Assembly (NCBI GenBank): GCA_002269645.1
Contig: NIVC01002444.1
Coordinates: forward strand, 62,001-126,000
Length of the DNA stretch: 64,000 bases
Source of the DNA: Macrostomum lignano
Taxonomy: Eukaryota
Reading direction: 5' to 3'
In this document: piece after piece, positions 6,395-62,932 of the stretch
How positions within the stretch are numbered: the stretch's first letter is position 1
How the letters are laid out: every line of letters begins with the position of its first letter
Position numbers and translations under genes: made by a program
The notes under the pieces: model-generated
What the model saw: only the letters and a program-made list of their open reading frames with translations
Databases searched by the model: none
What the model was told of the DNA's origin: nothing

Positions 6395-9300
6395 ATGCCC
6401 GCGGCCTGCTGAGCGATGCCGCCGATCGAGACATCGGCAGCGGAGCCGACAGTAAGGCGACGGCCTCGGCTAGCTCAGATTTTGATGGCATCGGCGACGG
6501 CGAGGAGACCTACACGGTGGAGCATGCAGTTGAGAAGCTGGGATTTGGTCGGTTCCAGCTACGGATTCTGTTCATTTGCGGCATCATGACGGTGAGAGCT
6601 TCGTTGAAAAATCAATATAGTTAGCGAAATCCCGCCCACACAGTCTAGCAAGAGAGCAGAAAGAATTTCCTATGTAGCTACACCGACCAGCTGCTCAAAC
6701 TGCAAAAGTAGCTCTCCTTACAGGACTCACTTTTTTCTGAATTGTTGCAGTTCGCGCACAGACCGTTCGCTTCTTCTACTGGGTATGAAAGTCTCGCGAT
6801 ATTTTAAAAGTTCTTGGCTCAAATTCCTAGTCGACCTCGCTTGCTGCGTCGTATTAGTTGTTAAATAACTGTCATGTGTTGCGAGTTTGCAAGAAATCTT
6901 CATAGTGATGCAATTTGTGTAGCCAGTGTTTCTAGTTACTTATATTCTAAGGCAAAATGTTTAATGCGCTGTGCTTTGAGCTACAGCCTTCAGATGCAAA
7001 TTTTGTAGATACAGATATAAAAGCCAGACACAGACAGTCTGTAGAGGTACATAACCCAGACACAGACAGTCTGTAGAGCTGCAGAACCCAGACACAGACA
7101 GTCTGTTGAGCTACAGAATCCAGACACAGACAGACAATCTGTAGAGCTACAGAACCCAGACACAAACAGTCTGTAGAGCTGCAGAACCCAGACACAGACA
7201 GACAATCTGTAGAGCTACAGAACCCAGATACAGACAGACAGTCTGTAGAGCTACAGAACCCAGATACAGACAGACAATCTGTAGAGCTACAGAACCCAGA
7301 CACAAACAGTCTGTAGAGCTGCAGAACCCAGACACAGACAGACAATCTGTAGAGCTACAGAACCCAGATACAGACAGACAGTCTGTAGAGCTACAGAACC
7401 CAGATACAGACAGACAATCTGTAGAGCTACAGAACCCAGATACAGACAGACAGTCTGTAGAGCTACAGAACCCAGATACAGACAGACAATCTGTAGAGCT
7501 ACAGAACCCAGATACAGACAGACAGTCTGTAGAGCTACAGAACCCAGATACAGACAGACAATCTGTAGAGCTACAGAACCCAGATACAGACAGACAGTCT
7601 GTAGAGCTACAGAAACCAGACACAGACAGTCTGTAGAGCTACAGAACCCAGACAGAGCCCAGACACACTGTCCGCACGCTATTCCCGCTCCGCGCAGGCC
7701 GCGGACGCCATGGAGATGCTGCTTCTCTCTGTACTGGGCCCGGCACTTCGCTGCGACTGGCAGCTCAGCTCCGCCCAGGTGGCCATCATCACCACGGTGG
7801 TGTTTGCGGGCATGTTCGGCGGCGCGCCCGCCTGGGGCGCCGTGTCGGACAAGCACGGCCGGAGAGGCGTGTTCGGCCTGAGCCTGAGCCTCATCGCCTA
7901 TTTCGGCCTGCTATGCTCATTCTCGCCAAGCTTTTTCTGGCTGGTGTCGCTCCGCGGCATGGTTGGATTCTGCATCAGCGGCGCCACCTCATCCTTCACG
8001 CTGCTGTCCGAGTACCTGCCTCAGACCTACAGGGCCAAAGTGCTCATAGCCTACAATGTGTTCTGGGGATTGGGAAGTTCGTTTGAAGTTCTTCTGGCCT
8101 ACATGGTGTTGCCTAACCTGGGATGGCGCTACCTGACTGCCTTCTCTGCCCTGCCGCTCTTCATCTTCATGCTGGCTCTGGGGGTGAGTTCTGTGTTATC
8201 GCCTCTGCAATCACCTCCATCAACTATCTTCCCTACAATCTCCTCCATCAAGAATTATCCCTACAGTCTCCTCCATCAAGAACTATCCCTACAGTCTCCT
8301 CCATCAAGAACTATCCATACAGTCTCCTCCATCAAGAACTATCCATACAGTCTCCTCCATCAAGAACTATCCCTACAATCTCCTCCATCAGGAATCGCCC
8401 CTACAATCTACATTGAGACTCTCCACAATAACCTTGGTGAATCTCCGCAATAACCTTGTAAAATCTCCCCAATAACCTTGAGGAATCTCCCCAATAACCT
8501 TAAGGAATCTCCCCAATAACCTTTTAAAATCTCCACAATAACCTTGGGAAATCTCCCCAATAACCTCGGGGAATCTCCCCAATACCTTGGGGAATCTCCC
8601 CAATAACCTTGGGGAATCTCCCTAATAACCTTAGTGAATTTCCTTAATAACCTTGGAGAATCTCCTCTTTAAATAGAAGAACTGTAAAATGCTACTATCT
8701 CATTGGCTCATTGCTGTTTAGTTCCTGCCTGAATCTGCCCGATACCTGCTGGCTTCCGGGCAGCCTAAGAAGGCGGCCGCTGTCATCGACCAGATTGCCA
8801 GAGACAATCGAAAGCCGCCAATGACTGGCCGGCCTGTGGCCGCCAGCGTCACGGAGGTGAGAATTTTTTTGCTGAAAACTGACATTTTCGTGGGTCTCTA
8901 GATCAGTCTAATTGAGAGGGTTGCCTAACTAAGAGGGTTGCCTAACTAAGAGGGTTGCCCAACTAAGAAGGTTGTCTAATTGAAAAGGTTGCTTGACTAA
9001 GAAGGTTGTCTAACTAAGTGGGTTGTCTAATTGAGAGGTTGCTTAACTAAGAAGGTTGTCTAGCTAAGTGGATTGCCTAATTGAGAGGGTTGCCTAACTA
9101 AGAGGGTTGCCCAACTAAGAAGGTTGTCTAATTGAAAAGGTTGCTTAACTAAGAAGGTTGTCTAGCTAAGTGGATTGCCTAATTGAGAAGGTTGTCTAAC
9201 TAAGTGGGTTGCCTAACCAAGTGGGTTGCCTAATTGAGAAGGTTGCCTAATCAAGTGGATTGCCTAATTGAGAGGGTTGTCTAACCAAGTGGGTTGCCTA

Positions 9301-11319: not shown

Positions 11320-12971
11320 CAGAGAGAAATGAGAAGAGATAAGAGAGAAAAGATAAAAGAAGAGAAAGGAAAGATGAGAGAGCAAAGACGAGAGAATAGA
11401 GGTGAGGGAAGAGACGAGAGAAGAGGGGAGAGATGAGAGAGTAGAGTAGAGAGTTAAGAGAAGAGAGAAAAGAATAGAAAGGAGAAGGAAGATAAGAGAG
11501 AAGAGGGGGTGAGAGGAGAGGAGAGAGAAAAGAAGAGACAAGAGATGAGATAAGAGAGATGAAAGAGAAGAGAGATGAGGGAAGATACGAGAGAAGAGGG
11601 GAGAGAGGAGAGAGGAGAGACGAGGGACGAGAGAGATGAGAGGAAACAAAGAGACGATAGAAATTTTAAAGGATCCAAGGGACGTAGGGAGAGTCAGGGA
11701 GAGACCAGAGTTTAGCAATATATGTTTTAGAGTCAGACAGACATTGCCTGACATTCTGCGCAGTACCCCAGCCAACAATGTCAATGTTTGCCTCAAACCC
11801 TAATTTTACACGAATGTGCTCCATTTTATGTCTACCTCTATCCTACTAACTATTAACAAGTTTTTGTTTGTGTATGGCCTTAGATTTCAGAATACACGCA
11901 AAAGTAGTTCTGGGGATTGGAATTCCCCGGGTTCAAAATCCGCGGGTTTCAACAGCTTGTCTTTTATAAAAAAACGATTTAAAAAATATCCATCTAGCAA
12001 GCGACAATCTTTCCTTGTGCCTCTGCGTCCGAGGTTTCAGGCTGACCGGGGCACCCTGCTGTCGCTGTTCCACCCCAACTACAGGCGCACCACGCTCACC
12101 CTGTTCTTCATGTGGTTCGGCGTTGCCTTCCTGTACTATGGCATCGTGCTGATTAGCACAGAGATCTTTCAATTTCACAGCGACTGCTACGGTAGCTCCG
12201 AGGTCACCGTAGGTCACAACACCACGGAGATTGTCACTGACGAGTCCTGCTGTCGGAGTCTGCAGCCGGACGATTATAAGGCCATGCTAATCTCTTCGTT
12301 TGGCGAGTTCGTCATCATACCGTTTAATCTGATCACGATTGACGCCCTGGGCAGGCGTTGGACTATGGCTATTAATTATGGACTCACCAGCGTGTTCTTT
12401 GGCCTCACCTATATCTGCGTGCCCAAGGCTGTCACTACAGCTTTTCTGTTCATGATTCGGGCGCATGCGGCTGGCATATTCAATACCATCTATATTTATA
12501 CTGTGGAGGTGCGTTTTCACTGTTTTCTGCTGTCTGTGGCTGCCTGACGAATGGAAACTGCCGTGTCTGCGGGTGATGATCGGAAACTGCCATCTATGAT
12601 GCCTACTAAAAAGTCCAATCCAGTTCGCACCTGCTCAATCTCTCCGCCAGGTGTACCCAACCGTAGTGCGCAGTGTTGGCCTTGGCGTCTGCTCCTCGAT
12701 AGCTCGACTCGGCTCGATGTCGACTCCATTTGTAGCGCAGGTGCTGATGCCGGACGTCAGCGTCCTGCTAGCGTTCTGCGTCTACGTGACCGTTGCCGTG
12801 GCCTGCGCCGTCCTAGCCCTACTGCTGCCGATTGAAACACGCGGTCGCGCGATGCCGCAGGGCTTGGTGGAGGCAGACCCGGACATTGTGGCTTTCAGGG
12901 CCGACAGCGTCGATGGCGAGGGCAGGGGCGCCACGGCAGAGATTCGAATGCAGGGCCGCTCGGAGAACTGA
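6395..12971 (+). CDS. SVOP: Synaptic vesicle 2-related (SVOP-like) MFS transporter, multi-exon; first coding exon uncertain (1535..1631 or 4828..4891)
   Basis: Phase-consistent GT-AG exons 6395..6591, 7698..8183, 8722..8856, 12041..12508, 12651..12971. The joined translation has SVOP/MFS motifs YTVEHAVEKLGFGRFQ, ADAMEMLLLSVL, SDKHGRR, TLLSEYLP, LPESARYL, DALGRR, EVYPTVVRSVGLG and LLPIETRGR. Confidence 0.88.
7021..7660. repeat. ~30-34-bp minisatellite (cagacagacagtctgtagagctacagaaccca)
   Basis: Tandem units in SVOP intron. Confidence 0.92.
8212..8660. repeat. Two abutting arrays: ~25-bp ctccatcaagaactatccctacagt and ~21-22-bp ccccaataaccttggggaatct
   Basis: Tandem units in SVOP intron. Confidence 0.85.
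8905..9545. repeat. 17-bp minisatellite (gggttgcctaactaaga)
   Basis: Tandem variant units. Confidence 0.9.
9625..10410 (+). mobile_element. Non-autonomous Helitron in SVOP intron
   Basis: A|TC 5' end followed by tacatataaaaa and a (TG)n/ctgt tract; internal repeated aaatttgacac motifs; 3' hairpin GGCTA-cgtt-TAGCC (10385-10398) then TTAG|T, a variant of the canonical CTRR end. Confidence 0.6.
10470..11660. repeat. Purine-rich low-complexity tract with (GA)n microsatellite core at ~11120-11315
   Basis: Almost exclusively A/G on the + strand. Confidence 0.92.
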
Positions 12972-14770: not shown

Positions 14771-15395
14771 TGTGAAGTTTCAAAGGTCGGATCCTATGCT
14801 CAGCCAATCAGATAGCTCAGCCAATTAGATTGCTCGACTAATTAGATTGCTCAGCCAATTAGATTGCTTAGCCAATCAGATTGCTCTGCCATCTAAATAG
14901 TTTTAGCTTTTGTCTGGCTAAGTTAGAAAACAGGCATCCAAAGTTGAAAGCCTACAGTAACAACGACAGGTTGGACCATAGACAACACGAACAAATTAGA
15001 CACCTAGAGTCGGGTATCCAGACTTCAATTTATGGTCACAGAGCAATTTGTAGCCAAGTTCCGAAAAAAATGTGGGCTGTCTATGGCCAAACCTGTCAAC
15101 CTGTGTTTCTGTAAGTTTACAAATGAATGACCATTACTCATATAGATTGATTTGATGTTGTTTCAATTGTCGTTTTAATGGATCAGTGCGTTGTTGCTGT
15201 TTTTGCTGTTGTTAGGCATCTGTCTGTGACCATTATTTTGTGCTTGACAATTATTGCTTTATGCGATAAGTTTATTAATCTGCCATGCGCATATCAGGTG
15301 TATTGAGTTATTTAAATTAACAAGAATTTGCTTGCCTAACGATGGCATTTGAAAACGAACTGCTTTTTTAAACTAGTTACTGAACATTTTCTGGC

Positions 15396-16160
15396 TGAGA
15401 GTCATTCTGAGAGTGAGGCTGAGAGTCATTCTGAGAGTGAGGCTGAGAGTCATTCTGAGAGTGAGGCTGAGAGTCATTCTGAGAGTGAGGCTGAGAGTGA
15501 GGGAAGAAAGCGGGGAGGAAGGGAGAGTGAGGGAAGAAAGCGGGGAGGAAGGGAGAGTGAGGGAAGAAAGCGGGGAGGAAGGGAGGGTGAGGGAAGAAAG
15601 CGGGGAGGAAGGGAGAGTGAGGGAAGGAAGCGGGGAGGAAGGGAGAGTAAGGGAAGAAAGCGGGGAGGAAGGGAGGGTGAGGGAAGAAAGCGGGGAGGAA
15701 GGGAGAGTGAGGGAAGAAAGCGGGGAGGAAGGGAGAGTGAGGCAAGAAAGCGGGGAGGAAGGGAGAGTGAGGCAAGAAAGCGGGGAGGAAAGGAGAGTGA
15801 GGGAAGAAAGCGGGGAGGAAGGGAGAGTGAGGGAAGGAAGCGGGGAAGAAGGGAGAGTGAGGGAAGAAAGCGGGGAGGAAGGGAGAGTGAGGCAAGAAAG
15901 CGGGGAGGAAGGGAGAGTGAGGGAAGGAAGCGGGGAGGAAGGGAGAGTGAGGGAAGAAAGCGGGGAGGAAGGGAGGGTGAGGGAAGAAAGCGGGGAGGAA
16001 GGGAGAGTGAGGGAAGGAAGCGGGGAGGAAGGGAGAGTGAGGGAGAAAGCGGGGAGGAAGGGAGAGTGAGGGAAGAAAGCGGGGAGGAAGGGAGAGTGAG
16101 GGAAGAAAGCGGGGAGGAAGGGAGAGTGAGGGAGAAAGCGGGGAGGAAGGGAGAGTGAGG
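15396..16160. repeat. Two abutting 30-bp arrays (gagagtcattctgagagtgaggct-type, then gagtgagggaagaaagcggggaggaaggga)
   Basis: Tandem units upstream of the MTLN-like ORF. Confidence 0.92.
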
Positions 16161-16313
16161 GAAGGTAGTCAGGAAGAGAGGCTATGGAAAGGACAGTGGC
16201 GAGCTTACACAGCCATACGCGCAATGATTACAGAGCCGTGGCCAATTTTCAAATTTATGTACCGCGGTCTTCCAGACTTCACACTTGAGCATTAGAGCTG
16301 TAGAAGCAGCAGC

Positions 16314-16583
16314 ATGCGCTGGTGGCGGGTCGCCAGCTACTGCCTGACATTCGGCCTGGGCTTCGCCTGCGGCTACGGAGCCTACGCGGCAAGGCTGCGC
16401 TTTCTGCGCTGGCGGCAGGACCGGCTGGCTAGGAAGCTGGGCTCCGTGCGGGACCAGCTGCGGCGGGCCACGGGCGGCAGCACAGTCGGGGCTGGGGCTG
16501 CGGCGGCCGCGGCCGCGATCAGACGGCGGGCTGACAGCGGCAGCGCTGAAGCCTCTGCGACTGATGGCGGCGAGGTGCTGTAG
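16314..16583 (+). CDS. MTLN: Mitoregulin (MTLN/SMIM37)-like microprotein, 89 aa; may also be exon 1 of a longer fusion
   Basis: Residues 11-52 align without gaps to recalled human mitoregulin (15/42 identical, including F-x2-G-x3-G and LxWRxxRLxxKL). In-frame stop upstream of the ATG; AATAAA at 16689. Confidence 0.65.
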   Translation: MRWWRVASYCLTFGLGFACGYGAYAARLRFLRWRQDRLARKLGSVRDQLRRATGGSTVGAGAAAAAAAIRRRADSGSAEASATDGGEVL

Positions 16584-16761
16584 ATGGATGAACACTGGCG
16601 CACTGACTGACTTTGTATTCCTATTTGTTGCTACTACAGTTGTACAAGCGAAGTACAATATGTTCCCTGTTAGCTGTTTTATGTTTTAAATAAACGATAC
16701 CAATTTTGCTTTGTATTCATTTTGGAACTTGATTCTTAATTTTAATGCTAGGATACAGGAA

Positions 16762-17558
16762 AGTAGATAGTACAGACAGATAGTACAGACAGGTAGATAG
16801 TACAGACAGGTAGATAGTACAGACAGGTAGTACAGACAGGTAGATAGTACAGACAGATAGTACAGACAGGTAGTACAGACAGGTAGTACAGACAGGTAGA
16901 TAATACAGACAGATAGTACAGACAGGTAGATAGTACAGACAGGTAGTACAGACAGGTAGTACAGACAGGTAGATAATACAGACAGATAGTACAGACAGGT
17001 AGATAGTACAGACAGGTAGATAGTACAGACAGGTAGATAGTACAGACAGTAGATAGTACAGATAGGTAGATAGTACAGACAGGTAGATAGTACAGACAGG
17101 TAGATAGTACAGATAGGTAGATAATACAGACAGGTAGATAGTACAGACAGTAGATAGTACAGATAGGTAGATAGTACAGACAGGTAGATAGTACAGACAG
17201 GTAGACAGAGCTGACAGGTAGACAGAGCTGACAGGTAGACAGAGCTGACAGGTAGACAGAGCTGACAGGTAGACAGAGCTGACAGGTAGACAGAGCTGAC
17301 AGGTAAACAGAGCTGACAGGTAGACAGAGCTGACAGGTAGACAGAGCTGACAGGTAGACAGAGCTGACAGGTAAACAGAGCTGACAGGTAAACAGAGCTG
17401 ACAGGTAGACAGAGCTGACAGGTAGACAGAGCTGACAGGTAGACAGAGCTGACAGGTAGACAGAGCTGACAGGTAGACAGAGCTGACAGGTACACAGGGC
17501 TGACAGGTAAACTGAGCTGACAGGTAAACTGAGCTGACAGGTACACAGAGCTGACAGG
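16762..17558. repeat. Two related 17-bp arrays (gtagatagtacagacag; gacaggtagacagagct)
   Basis: Tandem units between the MTLN-like ORF and the cullin-like exon. Confidence 0.93.
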
Positions 17559-17576
17559 TATTAAACCCTTTCAAAG

Positions 17577-19569: not shown

Positions 19570-22500
19570 TCATGGGCCCTGCCGCAAATCAAAGCAACAG
19601 TCGATCCGGGGGCAGCTAGGGGGAGCCAACCAGTCAAGCATTCCACTGAAGCTCAAAACTTCACAGATTCGAAACTTCACAGAATCGAAACTTCACAGAA
19701 TCGAAACTTCACAAAATCGAAACTTCACAGAATCGAAACTTCACAGATTTGAAACTTCACAGAATCGAATCTTCACCATATCGAAACTTCACAGAATCGA
19801 ATCTTCACAGAATCGAAACTTCACAGAATCGAACCTTCACAGAATCGAACCTTTAAAGAATCGAATCTTCACAGATTCGAAACTTCACAAGCTCGAAAAT
19901 TCACAAAATCAAAACTTCACAGGTTTGAAACTTCACAGAATCGAAACTCCACAGAATCGAAACTTCACAAAATCAAAACTTCACAGGTTTGAAACTTCAC
20001 AGGTTTGAAACTTCACAGAATCGAAACTTCACAGAATCGAAACTTCACAGAATCGAAACTTCACAAAATCAAAACTTCACAGAATCGAAACTTCACAGAA
20101 TCGAAACTTCACAGAATCGAAACTTCACAGATTCGAAACTTCACAGATTCGAAACTTCACAAAATCGAATCTTCACAGATTCGAAACTTCACAGGTTCGA
20201 AACTTCACAGGTTCGAAACTTCACAAAATCGAATCTTCACAGATTCGAAACTTCACAAGCTCGAAAATTCACAGAATCGAAACTTCACAGATTCGAAACT
20301 TCACAGAATCGAATCTTCACAGAATCGAATCTTTACAGAATCAAATCTTTACAGAATCGAATCTTCACAGAATCGAAACTTCACAAGCTCGAAAATTCAC
20401 AGAATCAAATCTTCACAGAATCAAAAACTCACAGAATCGAATCTTCACAGAATCGAATCTTTACAGAATCGAATCTTCACAGAATCGAATCTTCACAGAA
20501 TCGAAACTTCACAAGCTCGAAAATTCACAGAATCAAATCTTCACAGAATCGAAACTTCACAGAATCGAAAATTCACAGAATCGAAACTCCACAGAATCGA
20601 AACTTCACAGAATCGAAACTTCACAGAATCTAAACTTCACAGAATCGAAACTTCACAGAATCGAAAATTCACAGAATCGAAACTTCACAGAATCGAATCT
20701 TCACAGAATCGAATCTTCACAGATTCGAAACTTCACAGGTTCGAAACTTCACAGGTTCGAAACTTCACAAAATCGAACCTTCACAGATTCGAAACTTCAC
20801 AAGCTCGAAAATTCACAGAATCGAAACTTCACAGATTCAAAACTTCACAGATTTGAAACTTCACAGGTTCGAAACTTCACAAAATCGAATCTTCACAGAT
20901 TCGAAACTTCACAAGCTCGAAAATTCACAGAATCGAAACTTCACAGATTCGAAACTTCACAGAATCGAATCTTCACAGAATCGAATCTTTACAGAATCAA
21001 ATCTTTACAGAATCGAATCTTCACAGAATCGAAACTTCACAAGCTCGAAAATTCACAGAATCAAATCTTCACAGAATCAAAAACTCACAGAATCGAATCT
21101 TCACAGAATCGAATCTTTACAGAATCGAATCTTCACAGAATCGAATCTTCACAGAATCGAAACTTCACAAGCTCGAAAATTCACAGAATCAAATCTTCAC
21201 AGAATCGAAACTTCACAGAATCGAAAATTCACAGAATCGAAACTCCACAGAATCGAAACTTCACAGAATCGAAACTTCACAGAATCTAAACTTCACAGAA
21301 TCGAAACTTCACAGAATCGAAAATTCACAGAATCGAAACTTCACAGAATCGAATCTTCACAGAATCGAATCTTCACAGATTCGAAACTTCACAGGTTCGA
21401 AACTTCACAGGTTCGAAACTTCACAAAATCGAACCTTCACAGATTCGAAACTTCACAAGCTCGAAAATTCACAGAATCGAAACTTCACAGATTCAAAACT
21501 TCACAGATTTGAAACTTCACAGGTTCGAAACTTCACAAAATCGAATCTTCACAGATTCGAAACTTCACAAGCTCGAAAATTCACAGAATCGAAACTTCAC
21601 AGATTCGAAACTTCACAGAATCGAATCTTCACAGAATCGAATCTTTACAGAATCAAATCTTTACAGAATCGAATCTTCACAGAATCGAAACTTCACAAGC
21701 TCGAAAATTCACAGAATCAAATCTTCACAGAATCAAAAACTCACAGAATCGAATCTTCACAGAATCGAATCTTTACAGAATCGAATCTTCACAGAATCGA
21801 ATCTTCACAGAATCGAAACTTCACAAGCTCGAAAATTCACAGAATCAAATCTTCACAGAATCAAAAACTCACAGAATCGAATCTTCACAGAATCGAATCT
21901 TTACAGAATCGAATCTTCACAGAATCGAATCTTCACAGAATCGAAACTTCACAAGCTCGAAAATTCACAGAATCAAATCTTCACAGAATCGAAACTTCAC
22001 AGAATCGAAAATTCACAGAATCGAAACTCCACAGAATCGAAACTTCACAGAATCGAAACTTCACAGAATCGAAAATTCACAGAATCGAAACTCCACAGAA
22101 TCGAAACTTCACAGAATCTAAACTTTACAGAATCTAAACTTCACAGAATCGAAACTTCACAGAATCGAAAATTCACAGAATCGAAACTTCACAGAATCGA
22201 ATCTTCACAGAATCGAAACTTCACAGAATCGAACCTTCACAGAATCGAAACTTCACAGGTTTGAAACTTCACAGAATCGAACCTTAAATGAATCGAATCT
22301 TCACAGAATCGAATCTTTACAGAATCGAATCTTTACAGAATCGAAACTTCACAGAATCGAACCTTCACAGAATCGAACCTTAAATGAATCGAATCTTCAC
22401 AGAATCGAATCTTCACAGATTCGAAACTTCACAGGTTCGAAACTTCACAGGTTCGAAACTTCACAAAATCGAACCTTCACAGATTCGAAACTTCACAAGC

Positions 22501-25500
22501 TCGAAAATTCACAGAATCGAAACTTCACAGATTCAAAACTTCACAGATTTGAAACTTCACAGGTTCGAAACTTCACAAAATCGAATCTTCACAGATTCGA
22601 AACTTCACAAGCTCGAAAATTCACAGAATCGAAACTTCACAGATTCGAAACTTCACAGAATCGAATCTTCACAGAATCGAATCTTTACAGAATCAAATCT
22701 TTACAGAATCGAATCTTCACAGAATCGAAACTTCACAAGCTCGAAAATTCACAGAATCAAATCTTCACAGAATCAAAAACTCACAGAATCGAATCTTCAC
22801 AGAATCGAATCTTTACAGAATCGAATCTTCACAGAATCGAATCTTCACAGAATCGAAACTTCACAAGCTCGAAAATTCACAGAATCAAATCTTCACAGAA
22901 TCAAAAACTCACAGAATCGAATCTTCACAGAATCGAATCTTTACAGAATCGAATCTTCACAGAATCGAATCTTCACAGAATCGAAACTTCACAAGCTCGA
23001 AAATTCACAGAATCAAATCTTCACAGAATCGAAACTTCACAGAATCGAAAATTCACAGAATCGAAACTCCACAGAATCGAAACTTCACAGAATCGAAACT
23101 TCACAGAATCGAAAATTCACAGAATCGAAACTCCACAGAATCGAAACTTCACAGAATCTAAACTTCACAGAATCTAAACTTCACAGAATCGAAACTTCAC
23201 AGAATCGAAAATTCACAGAATCGAAACTTCACAGAATCGAATCTTCACAGAATCGAAACTTCACAGAATCGAACCTTCACAGAATCGAAACTTCACAGGT
23301 TTGAAACTTCACAGAATCGAACCTTAAATGAATCGAAACTTCACAGAATCGAACCTTAAATGAATCGAATCTTCACAGAATCGAATCTTTACAGAATCGA
23401 ATCTTTACAGAATCGAAACTTCACAGAATCGAACCTTCACAGAATCGAACCTTAAATGAATCGAATCTTCACAGATTCGAAAATTTACAAGCTCGAAAAT
23501 TCACAAAATCAAAACTTCACAGGTTTGAAACTTCACAGAATCGAAACTTCACAGAATCGAAACTTCACAGAATCGAAACTTCACAGAATCGAAACTTTAC
23601 AGAATCGAAACTTTACAGAATCGAAACTTCACAGAATCGAAACTTCACAGAATCGAAACTTCACCAACTTGAACCTTGACGTCCCCAATTGGTGACTCTA
23701 TTTCTTAGCAGTAATTTCCCACCATTCACAATTGATCGGGTCCGCTGAATACTGAATTAGACTAGCCATCTATTCGGTTCTAAACTGGCTACTTATACGC
23801 TCGTAAGTAGTCATAAGCGGAATGCATGCACATATTCGGCACAAAGCAACGGTTTTCACGGCCGATGCATGCAGTAAGCGGGGCCACGCCCCCTGCGCAG
23901 CTCAGGCTGGCTAGATCTGGGGGGACACGCCCAGTCTCACAATGATTGAATTCCGCTTTTGACACAGGGAGGGGGACGCCTGCACTATAGCCCCATACCC
24001 CCATACAATAAAAATCGCGGGGCGGCTCAAGCCATTGGAAACCTTTCATGTTCATTTGTCCGACATTTTTTGTCCTCCTTTTTTGCTTGAATGCTTGCGT
24101 TTATTGGGCACCCAACCCACCATGCGATTTCAATTTGAAAATTGGCATTCATCTTAGCTCTCTGTCGGGCTTGTAAATGGATGCGATTTTCTCTGTCTCA
24201 CCAGTCGCCGTCAGCGGCCAGGCTTTTGCTTGAGGAGCTCCGCCGTCGTCTTCGATGATGCTCAGCATGGCAACCGGAGCCGTGACGGCAGCAGCAGCAG
24301 CAGTGGGCGCTGCCGTCACCGATTGCGGCCACTTCCTGCAGCTTGCTGGCTGCCAGTCTAAGGCTGGCGTCCACGTCTGAAGTGCTGCCACTGCCACGTC
24401 CGCCTCTGTTGGTTGAGGGTTGGTGCTAGGGTTATGGCTAGGGTTATGGCTAAGGTATGGCTAGGGTTATGGCTTGGGTTATGGCTATGGCTATGGCTAA
24501 GGTTATGGCTATGGTTATGGCTAGGGTTATGGCTTGAGTTATGGCTAGGGTTATGGCTAGGGTTATGGCTTGGGTTATGGCTAGGGTTATGGCTAGGGTT
24601 ATGGCTAGGGTTATGGCTAGGGTTATGGCTAGGGTTATGGCTAGGGTTATGGCTAGGGCTATGGCTAGGGTTATGGCTAGGGTTAAGGCTAGGGCTATGG
24701 CTAGGGTTACGGCTAGGGTTATGGCTAGGGTTAAGGCTAGGGCTATGGCTAGGGTTATGGCTAGGGTTATGGCTAGGGTTATAGCTAGGGCTATGGCTAG
24801 GGTTATGGCTAGGGCTATATGGCTAGGGCTATGGCTAGGGTTATGGCTAGGGTTATGGCTTGGGTTATGCCTAGGGTTATGGCTAGGGTTATGGTTAGGG
24901 TTATGGCTAAGGCTCTGGCTAGGTTAGGATTAGGGTTTAAGGGTTCTGATTTACTTATCTTGGTTGAGAAGGAGCTTTCTACACAGATGCAACCTAAAGA
25001 TTGCATGAATTTGTTTTGTTACCTGGTCTCCTGCAGGTATTAGTTAATTAGTAAATTCGTTAACTATTTAGTTATTACTTTAATCTAATTAATTTCGTTA
25101 ATTAATTAAGTAAGTTAATTAATTAGTTAATTCGTTAAGTAACAATAGAGAATGCTAAACCATGCCTGTAGGCCTTCCTCTTATTTTTCGCATTCGTGAA
25201 GTCCCTCCCTAGCAGTTGATTGATTAAATTTTAAAGCAATTGCTTCTGAGCGATTTATGATAAAAATAGAACTCGCAGACGCTGAGAAATGGCAGCAGAG
25301 TTTGTGCAGAATGCAATGCTCTATTATTTTAATTTTCAGCAGTTCACCAGCAACCCTAGCGGTCCGTCCCTATTGTCAAAGAAAAACTAGCAAAAAGCTA
25401 AAAACAAACAATTAGAAAATCAGACGTTAGCGAAGGACCCCAGCTACAATATTCTTTGTCATACTTTTCGAACAATTTTTTGTTGGCTTTGAATCAGATT

Positions 25501-28500
25501 TTTAAACATTTTTTTTCAAATGATGAACTGCCGGAGCTTCATCTATCATTGGCTACGACCAATAAATAATGACATCAATTTTGACTATGACCAATTATGA
25601 CATCAATTTTGACTATGACCAATTATGACAGATCAATTTTGACTATGATCAATTATGACAGATCAATTTTGACTATGACCAATTATGACAGATCAATTTT
25701 GACTATGACCAATTATGACAGATCAATTTTGACTATGACCAATTATGACAGATCAATTTTGACTATGATCAATTATGACATATCAATATTGACTATGACC
25801 AATCTATGACCAATATTGAGTATGAACAATCTATGACCAATATTGACTATGACCACTATATGATCAATACTGACTATGACCACTCTATGATCAATATTGA
25901 GTATGACCACTCAATGATCAATACTGACTATGACCACTCTATGATCAATACTGACTATGACCACTCTATGATCAATACTGACTATGACCACTCTATGATC
26001 AATACTGACTATGACCACTCTATGATCAATACTGACTATGACGCCCTATGATCAATACTGACTACAGCAAGTAGTGCATATATGACCAGTAAAATCCATG
26101 ACTCAGATTGCTTGTCATGCCTGTCACTGCGATGACATGATTATCGATTTTCAATTCCAAAGAGACTGTGCACCATCAGTGCAGTCTGCCCAGCCGAGCT
26201 CACCCAGCTGCTCTTGGCGGCATGTCCGCCGAGTTCTCCTTGGTCTGGTAGGCCGAGTCGCCCAGCCTGGCCTTCACTGGCGTCGGGCAGTCCCGCTCGC
26301 TGCGGCGGTGGCCGCGGTGACGCTGACACCGATTTCGGCTGCTGCTGCAGCTGGAGCGGCAGCTGCCCTGACGGTTGAGCGGCTGCGGCGGCGGCGGCGG
26401 CCCGGCCTGAGGCTTCTGTGTCGGCGCCGACTCAGTCGAAAGCTGCACCTCCGCCGCCGCGCCCGCTGCCGCAGCATCCGTTGCCGTTGCCGCCGCTTCA
26501 GATGTCGGCGACTGCCTAGACGATACGCTGGCAGTGTCGCCGCCGCTCTCCCGCGGATGCTCTGGCCCACCGCCCAAGCATTCGAATCCGAAGTCTTGCG
26601 CGAATTCGTTGTCGTTGTCGTACTCCAGCGCCCGGCGCCTCAGCCGGAGGAGTTGCCGCTGCCGCAGCTGCCTGCCAGCAGCCGGCAGGATCGCCGAGTG
26701 CGACTCGGTGGCGCGGCGGCTCCAGTCCTCCACGTAGATGAAGGTGTCCCCGGCCACGATGGGGGAGCGGCAGTCGCCAGCGACGTCCTCCAGCGAAGGC
26801 GTCGGCGAGGCCAGCCGCGGCGGGCAGAGCTCCGCTGCCGAGGCCGAGGCTGGCGCGGCCGCTGCCCAGGCGCCCTTCGTCGAGTAGGTAGACTTTGCTG
26901 AGGACGCTGCCACCGCCGCTGCCGCCGCCGAGGGCTCCGTCGCAAACGCCGCTGCTGAGGAAATCGGCGGCACGGCCAGCAACATTGGCGGCGGCGGCCG
27001 CGGCTGCGCGGACTCGCACAGCTGGCGGAGCTCCGCCCGGAACCGCTCAAGCCGGCGGTTCGCCAGCTCCTCGACGCGTCCTCTGGCGACGCCGGTATCG
27101 GTGCCGGGGCTGCAGGGCACCGCCGAGACCGACCGGCGCCGACGCCGCTCCCGACCCTGACGTCGGAGCTGCCGGCTGGAGTTGCGGCGCTCGCGCCCGT
27201 CGGCCTGACTTCCCGCCTCCCCCTGCTCCTCCTCCAACTCGTCCGCTGCAGCCGCTTCGGCAGCAGCCGCCTTGGCCGCGGCGCAGCTCATGTCCTCGAT
27301 GGAGTTGCACTTCACCGCCTGGGCACCCTTGGCTCGGGCCTCCGCAGCTGTGGGTTGCTGGGCCAGCAGCCACGAGGCCACCCCGCTGTTGAACTCGCCA
27401 CCGCAGCAGCTGGACGCCGACAGTCGCGGCTGCAAGGCTGGCAGCGGCTCCGCGTCCTCCGCCATCAGGCATCGCCGGCTTCGACTTCTTCGGCGGTGCT
27501 CCCGACCGCAGCTGCTCCCGGCCTCGGCGCCGCCTTCTCCGTGAAACCGCGCCCTCAGCACGAGCACCTCGGCCTGGAATCGACGCCAGCAGCGGCGGCA
27601 GGTGCAACCGGCGGAAGCCTGGCGGACCAGCCGGTCCAACAGTTGACGACGATTCGCCGCCGTCTCCGAGGTGTCCAGCGGGCCTTCAGCTGGCGGTCCG
27701 GGCGCCTCCGCCTCTGCCTCGGCCTCCTCCTGGCAGCAGCGGCGGCAGCGGCGCCCCGGTCTTCGCCGGGAACTTCCGCCGCCGTTCCAGCCTTCGTTAT
27801 CGGCGATGTTCAGTCGTCCAGCATCGCCTGCAGCCGACGACATCGCGGCGAAGTCGATGCAGCTCCTGCTGCCGCCGCAGACGCTACCGCCATGCCCGTC
27901 CCGGCTTCGGCGGTGCCGCCGACTGCGTCGCCGACTCGACGACTCGGCGGCTCCGGTGGCCGCCGTGGCAGCCGACTCGCTGGTGCCCGCGCTGGCCATG
28001 GTGGTCGTGCGGTTCCGCGCGAACGCTCGCCTCTTGCTTGAGCAGCGGCGGCTGCCGGCGCCGCCCTCCTCGCCTGTCGGCGAGTCCACGGTGAACAACA
28101 CGCTGTCCGCCGCGGTCCGCAGCGCCAGCCGGCTGGCCACCTCGTCAGCGAGGGCCCGCATTGCCGCTTCCGCTTCGGCCGCTTCGTCTGCTTCCGCCGC
28201 TGTGACCTCGGATGACCTGACGGCCAAGGGGCTCGAAGCGTGAAACTGCAGAGTCGGCGACTGCTGGATCGGCGACCTGCGGCCAGGGCCTTCGACGTGG
28301 TTGCTGGGAGTGACCTGCGGGAAAAATGTAAAAAAAGATGAACAACTGGCAGTTTGTAATCTGAACAATTCAAAACTGGATAATTGTTCTCGTCAAAATA
28401 CTTTAAATTCGCCATCCGTTCTGACGCAAGATGAAGTTTTCAGCATTAAATCAGACCGAGTGGACTCAGAAATGAGAGTGCACTTTTTATTGCAACTGCA

Positions 28501-51282: not shown

Positions 51283-53507
51283 TTAATCCATGAACTTGCG
51301 GTTGGGATTGCCGCCAAAAAGAATGTAACGCAGCTCGGGCACCATCTGCGCGCTGATCTGCTCCAGACGGCTCTCCAAGTTGTTACACACTCGAATTTTG
51401 CCAGCCCGACCGATTACATCAACGCCGCCAACTGAGTCTGGCGGCAGGAAATTCTGCTTATCAACCTGCAGTTTCACTGGCCGGCCGGTCTCACGCTTGT
51501 ACCGATCGGCTGCCGCGCCCATCACGCGCTCGACTAGGTGAACATCGGCCTGGCGACAGCGGAGCACCGCCTCGGGTTCTAGCAGTTGGAACAGGCCCTG
51601 AGTAACCAGGCCCTCCATTAGCTGGGCGTATCTGGGCGGGCGGGTGTAGTTTATGAGTTTATAGCAAGTCATAGAACAGAGCATTTATACATTGTTATTA
51701 CTATAGATAAGGGTGGATCTGAAGCTCACGCCCCCCCCCCCAAGGCACACAGATCGTACAAGCGTGACGAAGAGAAATTCCGGGCCAAGAAACATCCCAG
51801 AGTCACTTTAATCGTCCCAGAGTCACTTTAATCGTCCCAGAGTCACTTTAATCGTCCCAGAGTCACTTTCATCGTCCCAGAGTCACTTTCATCGTCCCAG
51901 ATGTCACTTTCATCGTCCCAGATGACACTTTCATCGTCCCAGAGTCACTTTCATCGTCCCAGAGTCACTTTCATCGTCCCAGAGTCACTTTCATCGTCCC
52001 AGAGTCACTTTCATCGTCCCAGATGTCACTTTCATCGTCCCAGATGTCACTTTCATCGTCCCAGAGTCACTTTCATCGTCCCAGATTCACTTTCATCGTC
52101 CCAGAGTCACTTTCATCGTCCCAGATGTCACTTTCATCGTCCCAGAGTCACTTTCATCGTCCCAGATGTCACTTTCATCGTCCCAGAGTCACTTTCAGCG
52201 TCCCAGAGTCACTTTCAGCGTCCCAGAGTCACTTTCATCGTCCCAGAGTCACTTTCAGCGTCCCAGAGTCACTTTCATCGTCCCAGAGTCACTTTCATCG
52301 TCCCAGAGTCACTTTCATCGTCCCAGAGTCACTTTCATCGTCCCAGAGTCACTTTCATCGTCCCAGATGTCACTTTCAGCGTCCCAGAGTCACTTTCATC
52401 GTCCCAGAGTCACTTTCATCGTCCCAGAGTCACTTTCATCGTCCCAGAGTCACTTTCAGCGTCCCAGAGTCACTTTCAGCGTCCCAGAGTCACTTTCATC
52501 GTCCCAGAGTCACTTTCAGCGTCCCAGAGTCACTTTCAGCGTCCCAGAGTCACTTTCATCGTCCCAGAGTCACTTTCATCGTCCCAGAGTCACTTTCATC
52601 GTCCCAGAGTCACTTTCAGCGTCCCAGAGTCACTTTCAGCGTCCCAGAGTCACTTTCATCGTCCCAGAGTCACTTTCAGCGTCCCAGAGTCACTTTCAGC
52701 GTCCCAGAGTCACTTTCATCGTCCCAGAGTCACTTTCAGCGTCCCAGAGTCACTTTCATCGTCCCAGAGTCACTTTCATCGTCCCAGAGTCACTTTCATC
52801 GTCCCAGAGTCACTGTCATCGTCCCAGATTTCACGGTAACAAGTCGCCAAAAAGTGGCCTAAGAGTCAATTTGAGGCGTTTTATTGTCCATAGAGTCGTA
52901 TCTGAGGCGTGCTGGAGTCGTTGTAGAATCACTGAGTTGCGTCTAAAGCGCCTCTCTGTTGACCGTCGCATTACAGTCGTTTGAGTCGTTAAAAAGTTGC
53001 AAGAGTTGCCCTTAGAGTCGCTAGAGAGTTGTTTGCAATGACTTTTTTGGCGATTCTTGTCACGGTAATGTTTTCAACGTATTGATTTGGGCCCAAAGTG
53101 TCAAAAACCAACTAACAGGAAAGTTCCATACCAAATTTCAAGCGCAAGCAGTTTACCCAAGCTTACTTTCCCTGGTCCTTGACAATCTCCCGCAGGCGCT
53201 GCGTGGTCTCAGTCAGAACGTCGCGCAGGTGCTGATCGCGCGCCTTCAGCACCCGCAGTCGGCCGTCGTTTTTCATATTGGAGTGCTGAATCTTCTTCTG
53301 CAACTCAGTCTGCTTCTCCTTTTTGCCATAGAATTCTAGGATCTTGACGCGTTCCTGCTGAACTAGACGCGACTTTTCAATGTTGAACTCTTCCTCGGCC
53401 TTGTTGTCAATCTCTTCTTTCTTCTCGTTGGCCTCCTGCTCGATGAAGGCCATCATCTGCTTGATCTGGCGTTCCACATCCGCGTCGCTTAAACCGCTAC
53501 CGGACAT
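51283..53507 (-). CDS. ATP6V1E1: V-type proton ATPase subunit E, 229 aa
   Basis: Exons 53507..53167 and 51631..51283 (phase 2, AA|gtaagc ... cccag|A); motifs [52 protein letters not shown]. Confidence 0.96.
51797..52828. repeat. 20-bp minisatellite (gtcccagagtcactttcatc) in V-ATPase E intron
   Basis: About 51 units. Confidence 0.95.
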
Positions 53508-61495: not shown

Positions 61496-62932
61496 CTAGA
61501 GCTCGGACCTAACGCCCTCAAACTTGTTAGGCCGTTTCTCGGCGTAGAATTTCTCAGCTGCGCGAACAAACGCGCGCACCTCCGAGTTCATTAAGTCGGG
61601 CAGTTCGAAAGCGGCAAAGTGACCGCCGTAGTCGAAATCAGCGTAGTGCAACAAGTTCGGATTGGTGACCCGGACGAAGCGTTCAGGAACACGGGAGAGC
61701 TCGTGGGCCAGGCAAGTCACTCCATACGGCACGTCGGATGGCATTGATTGATAAGCTGAGGTAGCTTCCATGTCGCTGCCGAACGACTCCTTGTAAAGCC
61801 GCATGGACGAAGTGATGCTGCCAGTGGTCCAGTAGATCATTACATTAGTCAGAAGCTCGTTCAGGCTGAATGTCGCCTTCAAGCCGACTAGGTTGCCATT
61901 TTCGGCAAAAAGATTCTCTGGCAAAGTCCACACGCTGAATTTTTCAATGATGTAGGCAGCCAGGCCCACTGGTGAGTCTGACAGGGCGTGGCCTACTGAG
62001 TCTGGTCGAGTCGAGTGTAGATGCATGTGCCCCGACTCTCGAATCGTGTTGCCGAAATTCTCCAGGTAAGGGAAGAGCTTGCCACAGTCCAGCCTGCTGA
62101 ACAGGACACCTTCTGGCAGGAATGATCCCAGAATCGTCTGGATCATTATCGACGGCTGACGAACGGGCTGAACAGGCATATTTGTATGAAAGCCGAGCAC
62201 TCGCTCCGGAAACAATCGAGGCATCACGTGACCGATGACGCTGCCGAAATCACCGGCTTGGATGTAATACTGGCGATACCCGAGCCTGACCATCAGCTTG
62301 TCGAACACTCGAGCACAGGCAGCGGCACTGAAGCCTCGCTTCTTCGCCGCTTCGGACCACCCGTATCCCGGAATCGAGGGAGCTACAACTTCGAACGCCA
62401 ACCCGTCCGTATCTGGAGTCGTCAGCAGTGGAATCAGCTTGTAAAACTCGAACACTGACCCGGGCCAACCGTGCAAAATCAACAGAGGCACTCGCTTCTT
62501 CACCCCCTGCTTCGACGGTTTCAGGTGCATAAAGTGCACTTTTAGTCCTTCGATCCGAGTGAAATAGTTCGGAAAACTGTTCAGGCGATCCTCCCAGACT
62601 CGCCAGTTGTATTTGTTGAGCCAGTGAGACACCAGCTGCTTCATGAAGGCGCCGTTGAAGCCATACTCGAAGCCGGAGTTCTCGACCGGCTCCACAAACT
62701 TGAACGCTTTCAAGCGCGACCTTAAATCGTCGAGTGTTGCATTGCTGACAGACAGTCTTGTGGCTTCCACCGCTTCGCCGTCGCTGCTTGAGTCGCTCGA
62801 GGCACCCCAGTTGAGCGTGGCTGGCAGGGCCGGCTTATCCGGAGCTGCGAGATTGTCCAGGCAGCCGAGGCCCGCAAGAAGCACGAATGCCAGACAGGCA
62901 GTGCAGGCCAGTGGGAGCAGAGTGTTGCACAT
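61496..62932 (-). CDS. EPHX1: Microsomal epoxide hydrolase 1-like alpha/beta hydrolase, 478 aa, intronless
   Basis: N-terminal membrane anchor, YGFN/WLNKYNWR N-terminal EH domain, LHGWPGS oxyanion motif, GDFGS nucleophile elbow, DSPVGLAAYIIEKF, GGHFAAFE. Confidence 0.95.
   Translation of the reverse strand: MCNTLLPLACTACLAFVLLAGLGCLDNLAAPDKPALPATLNWGASSDSSSDGEAVEATRLSVSNATLDDLRSRLKAFKFVEPVENSGFEYGFNGAFMKQLVSHWLNKYNWRVWEDRLNSFPNYFTRIEGLKVHFMHLKPSKQGVKKRVPLLILHGWPGSVFEFYKLIPLLTTPDTDGLAFEVVAPSIPGYGWSEAAKKRGFSAAACARVFDKLMVRLGYRQYYIQAGDFGSVIGHVMPRLFPERVLGFHTNMPVQPVRQPSIMIQTILGSFLPEGVLFSRLDCGKLFPYLENFGNTIRESGHMHLHSTRPDSVGHALSDSPVGLAAYIIEKFSVWTLPENLFAENGNLVGLKATFSLNELLTNVMIYWTTGSITSSMRLYKESFGSDMEATSAYQSMPSDVPYGVTCLAHELSRVPERFVRVTNPNLLHYADFDYGGHFAAFELPDLMNSEVRAFVRAAEKFYAEKRPNKFEGVRSEL

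Follow-up and report, generated by a model that had tools for sequence, protein, structure and literature searches.

A divergent flatworm homologue of the mitoregulin microprotein predicted in the genome of Macrostomum lignano

Introduction

Is mitoregulin, a tiny mitochondrial membrane protein that the literature treats as restricted to vertebrates, also encoded by an invertebrate? This question is raised by a short open reading frame (ORF) of the flatworm Macrostomum lignano, located in a 64,000-nucleotide stretch of genomic DNA (positions 62001-126000 of contig NIVC01002444.1, assembly GCA_002269645.1), which is referred to here as the window. Mitoregulin (MTLN, also MOXI, MPM or LEMP; LINC00116/SMIM37; Pfam PF22002) has been described in the discovery papers and in later work as conserved across vertebrates or from fish to humans, and reviews state that invertebrates are believed to lack it. 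A sequence-only reading of the window had proposed that the ORF encodes a mitoregulin-like microprotein in an invertebrate, on the basis of 15/42 gapless identities with human MTLN, and that it carries in addition a tail of approximately 37 residues rich in Ala, Gly and Ser. We therefore asked whether the resemblance exceeds chance, whether it reflects common ancestry, and whether the ORF has the properties of a gene.

Results

The ORF and its genomic setting

The ORF starts with ATG and encodes the 89-aa protein MRWWRVASYCLTFGLGFACGYGAYAARLRFLRWRQDRLARKLGSVRDQLRRATGGSTVGAGAAAAAAAIRRRADSGSAEASATDGGEVL. BLASTP against human MTLN reproduced 15/42 identities, with 22/42 positives, no gaps and an E-value of 1e-6 for this single comparison, and the tail was confirmed to contain A12 G7 S4 T3 out of 37 residues. 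The observation made by the sequence-only reading was thus confirmed in all its parts, including the invertebrate origin, given that the assembly represents the Mlig_3_7 genome of M. lignano, a neopolyploid free-living flatworm. The window is 100% identical to the NIVC01002444.1 locus, and the identical protein is encoded on two homeologous contigs of this assembly. The two copies are approximately 99% identical in the ORF and in the unique flanks alike, and inside the ORF they differ by two synonymous changes (GCA/GCC and ATC/ATT) and no non-synonymous change, which is compatible with constraint, although the copies are too close to prove it.

The features of the locus are listed in Table 1. 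The upstream in-frame stop codon closes the reading frame on the 5' side, so that the ATG, which has an A at -3, is the first possible start in this exon. The AATAAA consensus is conserved in the second genomic copy, but its use is inferred only, as is a possible promoter role of the CCAAT motif and of an AT-rich TTTATG, which lie about 55-70 nt upstream. The ORF occupies a unique island of about 590 bp bracketed by long tandem arrays, which generate spurious ORFs of 170-295 aa in several frames; their copy numbers differ between the two homeologous contigs, while the island between them is conserved. The region is 73% GC and contains a 158-aa antisense ORF, but neither the antisense nor the repeat-borne ORFs around the locus have a Pfam match, and no Rfam match was found on either strand. 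A same-strand MFS-transporter gene ends about 3.3 kb upstream. The other recognizable coding sequences of the window represent ordinary animal gene content without an obvious functional link to the ORF, and synteny with the vertebrate locus is not expected to be informative across this evolutionary distance.

Table 1. Positions of the mitoregulin-like ORF, its parts and its surroundings (window coordinates unless a contig is named).
Feature	Position	Strand	Description
Complete smORF	16314-16583	+	89 codons plus TAG stop; NIVC01002444.1:78314-78583
Second genomic copy	NIVC01000240.1:196456-196725	-	Identical protein
In-frame stop	16293-16295	+	TAG, 21 nt upstream of the ATG
Predicted transmembrane helix	16329-16391	+	Residues 6-26, VASYCLTFGLGFACGYGAYAA; uncharged, hydrophobic; F13-x-x-G16-x-x-x-G20-Y21
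Basic amphipathic helix	16392-16469	+	Residues 27-52, RLRFLRWRQDRLARKLGSVRDQLRRA; net charge +8; R27, L31, W33, L38, L42, L49
C-terminal extension	16470-16580	+	Residues 53-89; Ala/Gly/Ser-rich
Polyadenylation-signal consensus	16689-16694	+	AATAAA, 106 nt after the stop codon, in an AT-rich (34% GC) putative 3' UTR
CCAAT motif	16242-16246		
AG after pyrimidine-rich sequence	about 16274; about 16299		tcttccAG; ctgtAG
Unique island	16165-16753		About 590 bp
Upstream tandem arrays	15393-16164		24-bp x4 and 30-bp x22.5 purine-rich units, the latter at 15493-16164
Downstream tandem arrays	16754-17560		17/34/51-bp units
Other coding sequences	7710-8453 (+), ~11816-12970 (+), 51901-52839 (+), 61496-62932 (-)		MFS/sugar-transporter exons, a Vma22/CCDC115-like ORF, and a 478-aa uninterrupted epoxide hydrolase (EHN plus alpha/beta-hydrolase) ORF
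GC-rich block	26000-28400		69% GC; 722-aa ORF on the - strand without Pfam match; probably repeat or low-complexity sequence
Skewed block	19989-23304		36-38% GC, strongly skewed; run of + strand ORFs, one of which (22384-23304) gives a whole-protein HTH_31 score of 37.7 bits without any individually significant stretch; probably repeat or low-complexity sequence

Resemblance to vertebrate mitoregulin

The curated Pfam model PF22002 matched residues 10-49 of the ORF against profile positions 14-53 of 56 at 31.5 bits, above its gathering cutoff of 27 (E 1.7e-7), and was the only significant family out of 24,736. An HMM built from 28 diverse vertebrate MTLNs, from shark to mammals, scored the ORF at 20.8 bits, while 2000 full shuffles and 2000 shuffles preserving the composition of the hydrophobic, basic and tail segments reached at most 12.5 bits, and the reversed sequence scored -3.1 bits. 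Among the 943 stop-to-stop segments of at least 30 aa in all six frames of the window, the ORF was the only hit, with 21.6 bits against 5.5 bits for the next best. However, 20.8 bits would not be significant library-wide on its own, and significance therefore relies on the broader Pfam model and on the intermediates described below. The ORF is 31-41% identical to the 28 vertebrate sequences with 10 invariant columns; F13, G16, G20, R27, L31, W33, L38, L42 and L49 are invariant, without any gap in the core. The resemblance is thus position-specific and not a generic likeness of a transmembrane segment followed by a basic helix. A search of NCBIfam gave only a sub-threshold low-complexity hit in the tail, and a sequence search of the PDB returned only an SRP72 noise hit at E 1.3, so no MTLN structure is deposited.

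Relatives outside the vertebrates

A word-indexed search with the ORF found only the ORF itself, as its relatives are too divergent for shared 5-mers, and no orthologue above 50% identity, for example from other Macrostomum species, was found. The same type of search with human MTLN returned 88 clusters, of which every named one is a vertebrate. We then scanned 1.84 billion representative proteins exhaustively with a profile of the ORF plus the 28 vertebrate sequences. Of the 87 hits, about 44 are vertebrate-type (GWQANR), and the rest form a tail of roughly 40 proteins of 50-90 aa with the pattern SF..G...GY.....R..(Y/W)L..(K/R)R..L..KL..TQ..(I/L)D; a second profile search added 13 more. These approximately 50 short, unnamed proteins stem from Logan, ENA and JGI assemblies (source accessions include ERZ21939214, ERZ26052449, ERZ25069863, GCA_052426985.1, SRR33933613, SRR11715812 and JGI 3300042619/3300036111), and no published description of them was found. 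All 37 that were scanned hit PF22002 at E<=1e-3, with a best E-value of 2e-22. An HMM of 49 of these proteins, built without the ORF, scored the ORF at 52.3 bits (E 1.9e-18 per comparison) over residues 7-55 and human MTLN at 66.4 bits, whereas the best of 3000 segment-preserving shuffles of the ORF scored 16.0 bits. The vertebrate and non-vertebrate alignments matched in hhalign at 99.4% probability (E 3e-21) over 58 columns.

Given that the non-vertebrate set was retrieved with a profile containing the ORF, we rescored it with the vertebrate-only HMM using the full library size. Twenty-five proteins are significant on that basis alone (E<=1e-3; 35-49 bits), and an HMM built from just those 25 scored the ORF at 49.7 bits (E 1.4e-17). 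Homology is thus transitive from vertebrate MTLN through independent intermediates to the flatworm ORF, and the statistic survives any genome-wide six-frame correction. Several intermediates even keep a vertebrate-like N-terminus (MADISGRTL, MAEVSGRTL).

The non-vertebrate proteins (e.g. P0131, P0177, P0144/P0165, P0157 and P0187/P0188; here P numbers denote proteins and L numbers loci) give the best overall match to the ORF. They share with it GY rather than GW after the GxxxG and the stretch R(D/E)RLA(R/K)KL, and P0188 shares LTFGLGF.(A/C)GY. F13, G16 and G20 are at least 90% conserved in 36 of these relatives. Identity to the ORF reaches 41-42%, and several also carry variable C-terminal tails. 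Several lie on 0.1-1.7 Mb contigs with sparse ORFs and nearby Ty3/gypsy-type reverse transcriptase, integrase or capsid domains, so these are eukaryotic genomes. A search with P0165 found nothing confirmable in JGI metagenomes or GTDB genomes; the latter scan, of 185,579 prokaryotic species genomes, revealed no close relative of the most abundant metagenomic member. P0188 (51 aa; ILTFGLGFVAGYY…, 40% identical to the ORF) ends 10 nt before the ATG of a Med6 ORF on the same strand (L006:270-1068, Logan SRR33933613 contig 379227, AT-rich). This Med6 scores 158 bits to human MED6 but about 65 bits to yeast Med6; the organism is therefore an animal, and too diverged from human to be a vertebrate. 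The Med6 ORF ends at a canonical GTATGAGT...TTTTGTAG intron, so the contig is genomic DNA, and the smORF would lie in the Med6 5' leader, a possible bicistronic or uORF arrangement. No Med6 is present in the M. lignano window. As M. lignano is the only firmly identified non-vertebrate host, a wide distribution of the family in invertebrates is an inference.

Coding constraint and the C-terminal tail

Two related but clearly distinct genomes (loci L003 and L009) align only patchily, at about 68% identity around the smORF. Across the 52-codon core they differ at 12 codons synonymously and at 2 non-synonymously (binomial P 1.2e-5 against a neutral expectation of 72% non-synonymous changes), indicating purifying selection on the family core in this lineage, whereas their C-terminal tails diverge completely. 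The flatworm ORF mirrors this: its core codons 1-53 have GC1/2/3 of 0.64/0.60/0.91, a strong coding-type periodicity, while the tail, with 0.76/0.76/0.73, has none and falls outside the profile match. A codon-usage likelihood calculated against three other window ORFs did not separate the sense from the antisense frame. In a subgroup of MTLN-like proteins (SGKSFAVWMGLSF...; L003:8001-8246, L009:10001-10246, L007:73-387; P0143, P0176, P0178, P0179, P0182 and P0185), a nearly invariant core is combined with highly variable tails, some of which end in a shared ...VAGVVITA while others are apparently frame-shifted. C-terminal extensions therefore seem to come and go in this family, and the tail of the flatworm ORF is probably a weakly constrained, lineage-specific extension.

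Predicted protein architecture

Residues 1-5 (MRWWR) are basic. The following segment has a net charge of 0, with the best hydrophobic window at residues 10-26, and the charge of the basic segment is the same as that of the corresponding human segment, with a higher amphipathic moment. AlphaFold2, run with the alignment, predicts one continuous helix over residues 3-53 and a less confident helix over residues 57-83 (mean pLDDT 78.9). With an offset of +4 to human numbering, Y21 and W33 correspond to human W25 and W37, which Linzer et al. place at predicted subunit contacts of the MTLN homo-oligomer (PMC11732159).

Compared with vertebrate MTLN, the ORF is likewise a stand-alone intronless smORF with FxxGxxxG and an aromatic residue in one uncharged hydrophobic helix, and with the invariant Trp and Leu residues of the basic helix at the same gapless spacing. 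It differs in its length of 89 instead of 56 aa, the lack of the first roughly five residues (the acidic MADVSE motif), the replacement of Trp25 by Tyr, as in most non-vertebrate relatives, and the absence of the WQAN motif.

Sub-threshold similarity to the bacterial LapA domain

Vertebrate and non-vertebrate MTLN proteins (P0016, P0034, P0036, P0044, P0131, P0144, P0146, P0157, P0165) recurrently gave hits to the bacterial LapA/YciS model (LapA_dom, PF06305) of 14-26 bits, all below the gathering cutoff of 28 and always over the transmembrane plus basic helix, and one metagenomic member had been labelled YciS (DUF1049) by its source. In hhalign, the MTLN alignments matched E. coli K-12 LapA (L011:4244-4552) at 65-80% probability, aligning FAAGFAIGW, which is followed by an Arg/Lys/Leu-rich helix, with FxxGxxxG(W/Y). 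However, the ORF itself gave no LapA_dom hit even at E<=10, LapA has two transmembrane helices and a longer hydrophobic stretch after the GW, and the alignment needs gaps. This may reflect remote homology or convergence on a shared simple architecture; that the family descends from a bacterial envelope protein is a speculative and rather unlikely extension.

Discussion

We conclude with high confidence that the ORF belongs to a protein-coding gene of M. lignano for a divergent member of the mitoregulin family. The interpretation given by the sequence-only reading is supported at the level of homology and family membership: the absence of a significant HMM match and of homologues in related taxa, which had been set as its refutation, was not observed, and the opposite was found. 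What the analysis demonstrates is the sequence homology and the retention of the single hydrophobic helix with its motif and of the +8 basic helix with the invariant Trp and spaced Leu residues. In contrast, transcription, translation, localization and function are inferred from vertebrate MTLN biology (PMC11920140, PMC11732159). In this view, a short intronless transcript would be translated into an 89-aa protein anchored by residues 6-26 in a mitochondrial membrane. The most recent vertebrate evidence favors the outer membrane, with the short N-terminus towards the intermembrane space and the basic helix on the cytosolic face, although inner-membrane localization is also claimed. The small-residue and aromatic helix face would drive homo-oligomerization, and the basic helix would bind cardiolipin or other anionic lipids and partner proteins, with effects on lipid metabolism, membrane contacts and respiratory efficiency. 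Given that localization and mechanism are disputed even for vertebrate MTLN, this functional transfer is soft.

Other explanations were considered. The position of the ORF in a GC-rich spacer between tandem arrays, where long ORFs arise easily on both strands, and the missing codon periodicity of its tail might point to a chance ORF, but this is effectively refuted by the profile statistics; the ten invariant family positions that are kept, the GC3 of the core and the lack of any family match of the antisense ORFs also speak against it. Convergence of an independent invertebrate family of single-pass basic microproteins is similarly very unlikely. Although the sequences are short, the architecture is simple and the LapA_dom hits show that it attracts cross-matches, it is opposed by the continuous series of intermediates, some with an N-terminal M-A-[DE]-[VI]-S-G-R-T-L motif like the vertebrate MADVSERTL, by the profile-profile match, and by the identical, gapless spacing of F, G, G, aromatic, R, L, W, L, L, L.

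On sequence evidence alone, it appears unlikely that the ORF is an untranscribed or decaying relic of a true family member. The low-complexity tail, which looks as if the original stop codon had been lost, the surrounding repeats and the absence of close orthologues in our searches would fit this view. However, the frame is intact in both homeologous copies with only synonymous differences, all signature residues, the GC3 bias of the core, the start context, the upstream stop and the AATAAA are in place, and other family members also carry variable tails while their cores are under purifying selection. It is also unlikely that the segment is the last exon of a longer protein spliced in just upstream of the ATG, or a downstream cistron of the MFS-transporter gene, although AG dinucleotides preceded by pyrimidine-rich sequence lie between the upstream stop and the ATG and further upstream (Table 1), the MFS gene is on the same strand, and the smORF next to Med6 in another animal suggests that polycistronic arrangements occur in this family. 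All roughly 90 family members found are stand-alone ORFs of 47-110 aa whose profile match begins within about 15 residues of the N-terminus, or are obvious over-extensions; the N-terminus of the ORF aligns to profile position 6, and a 0.7-kb tandem array lies between the ORF and any upstream exon.

Literature searches on mitoregulin in invertebrates, Drosophila or metazoa found no claim of an invertebrate orthologue, and PF22002 was created from the vertebrate literature. Since this model scores the ORF higher than our vertebrate-only HMM, its seed may already contain some non-vertebrate sequences, so that the wider range of the family may be implicit at database level, which tempers the novelty. 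New is therefore a taxonomically unexpected flatworm member of a known family.

Together with about 50 non-vertebrate relatives, the flatworm ORF implies that MTLN predates vertebrates. It shows which residues are truly indispensable, namely FxxGxxxG-aromatic, one Arg, one Trp and the spaced Leu residues, and that the vertebrate N-terminal acidic motif and the exact length of 56 aa are dispensable. It is also a concrete example of a conserved smORF missed by annotation. We consider it probable that mitoregulin is not a vertebrate innovation but an ancient animal, at least bilaterian, microprotein family whose invertebrate members have gone unannotated because they are tiny and fast-evolving. 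M. lignano, a flatworm with working transgenesis, would then provide an invertebrate genetic system that, together with a deep alignment for evolutionary-coupling or mutational design, would make the disputed membrane, partners and mechanism of MTLN easier to resolve.
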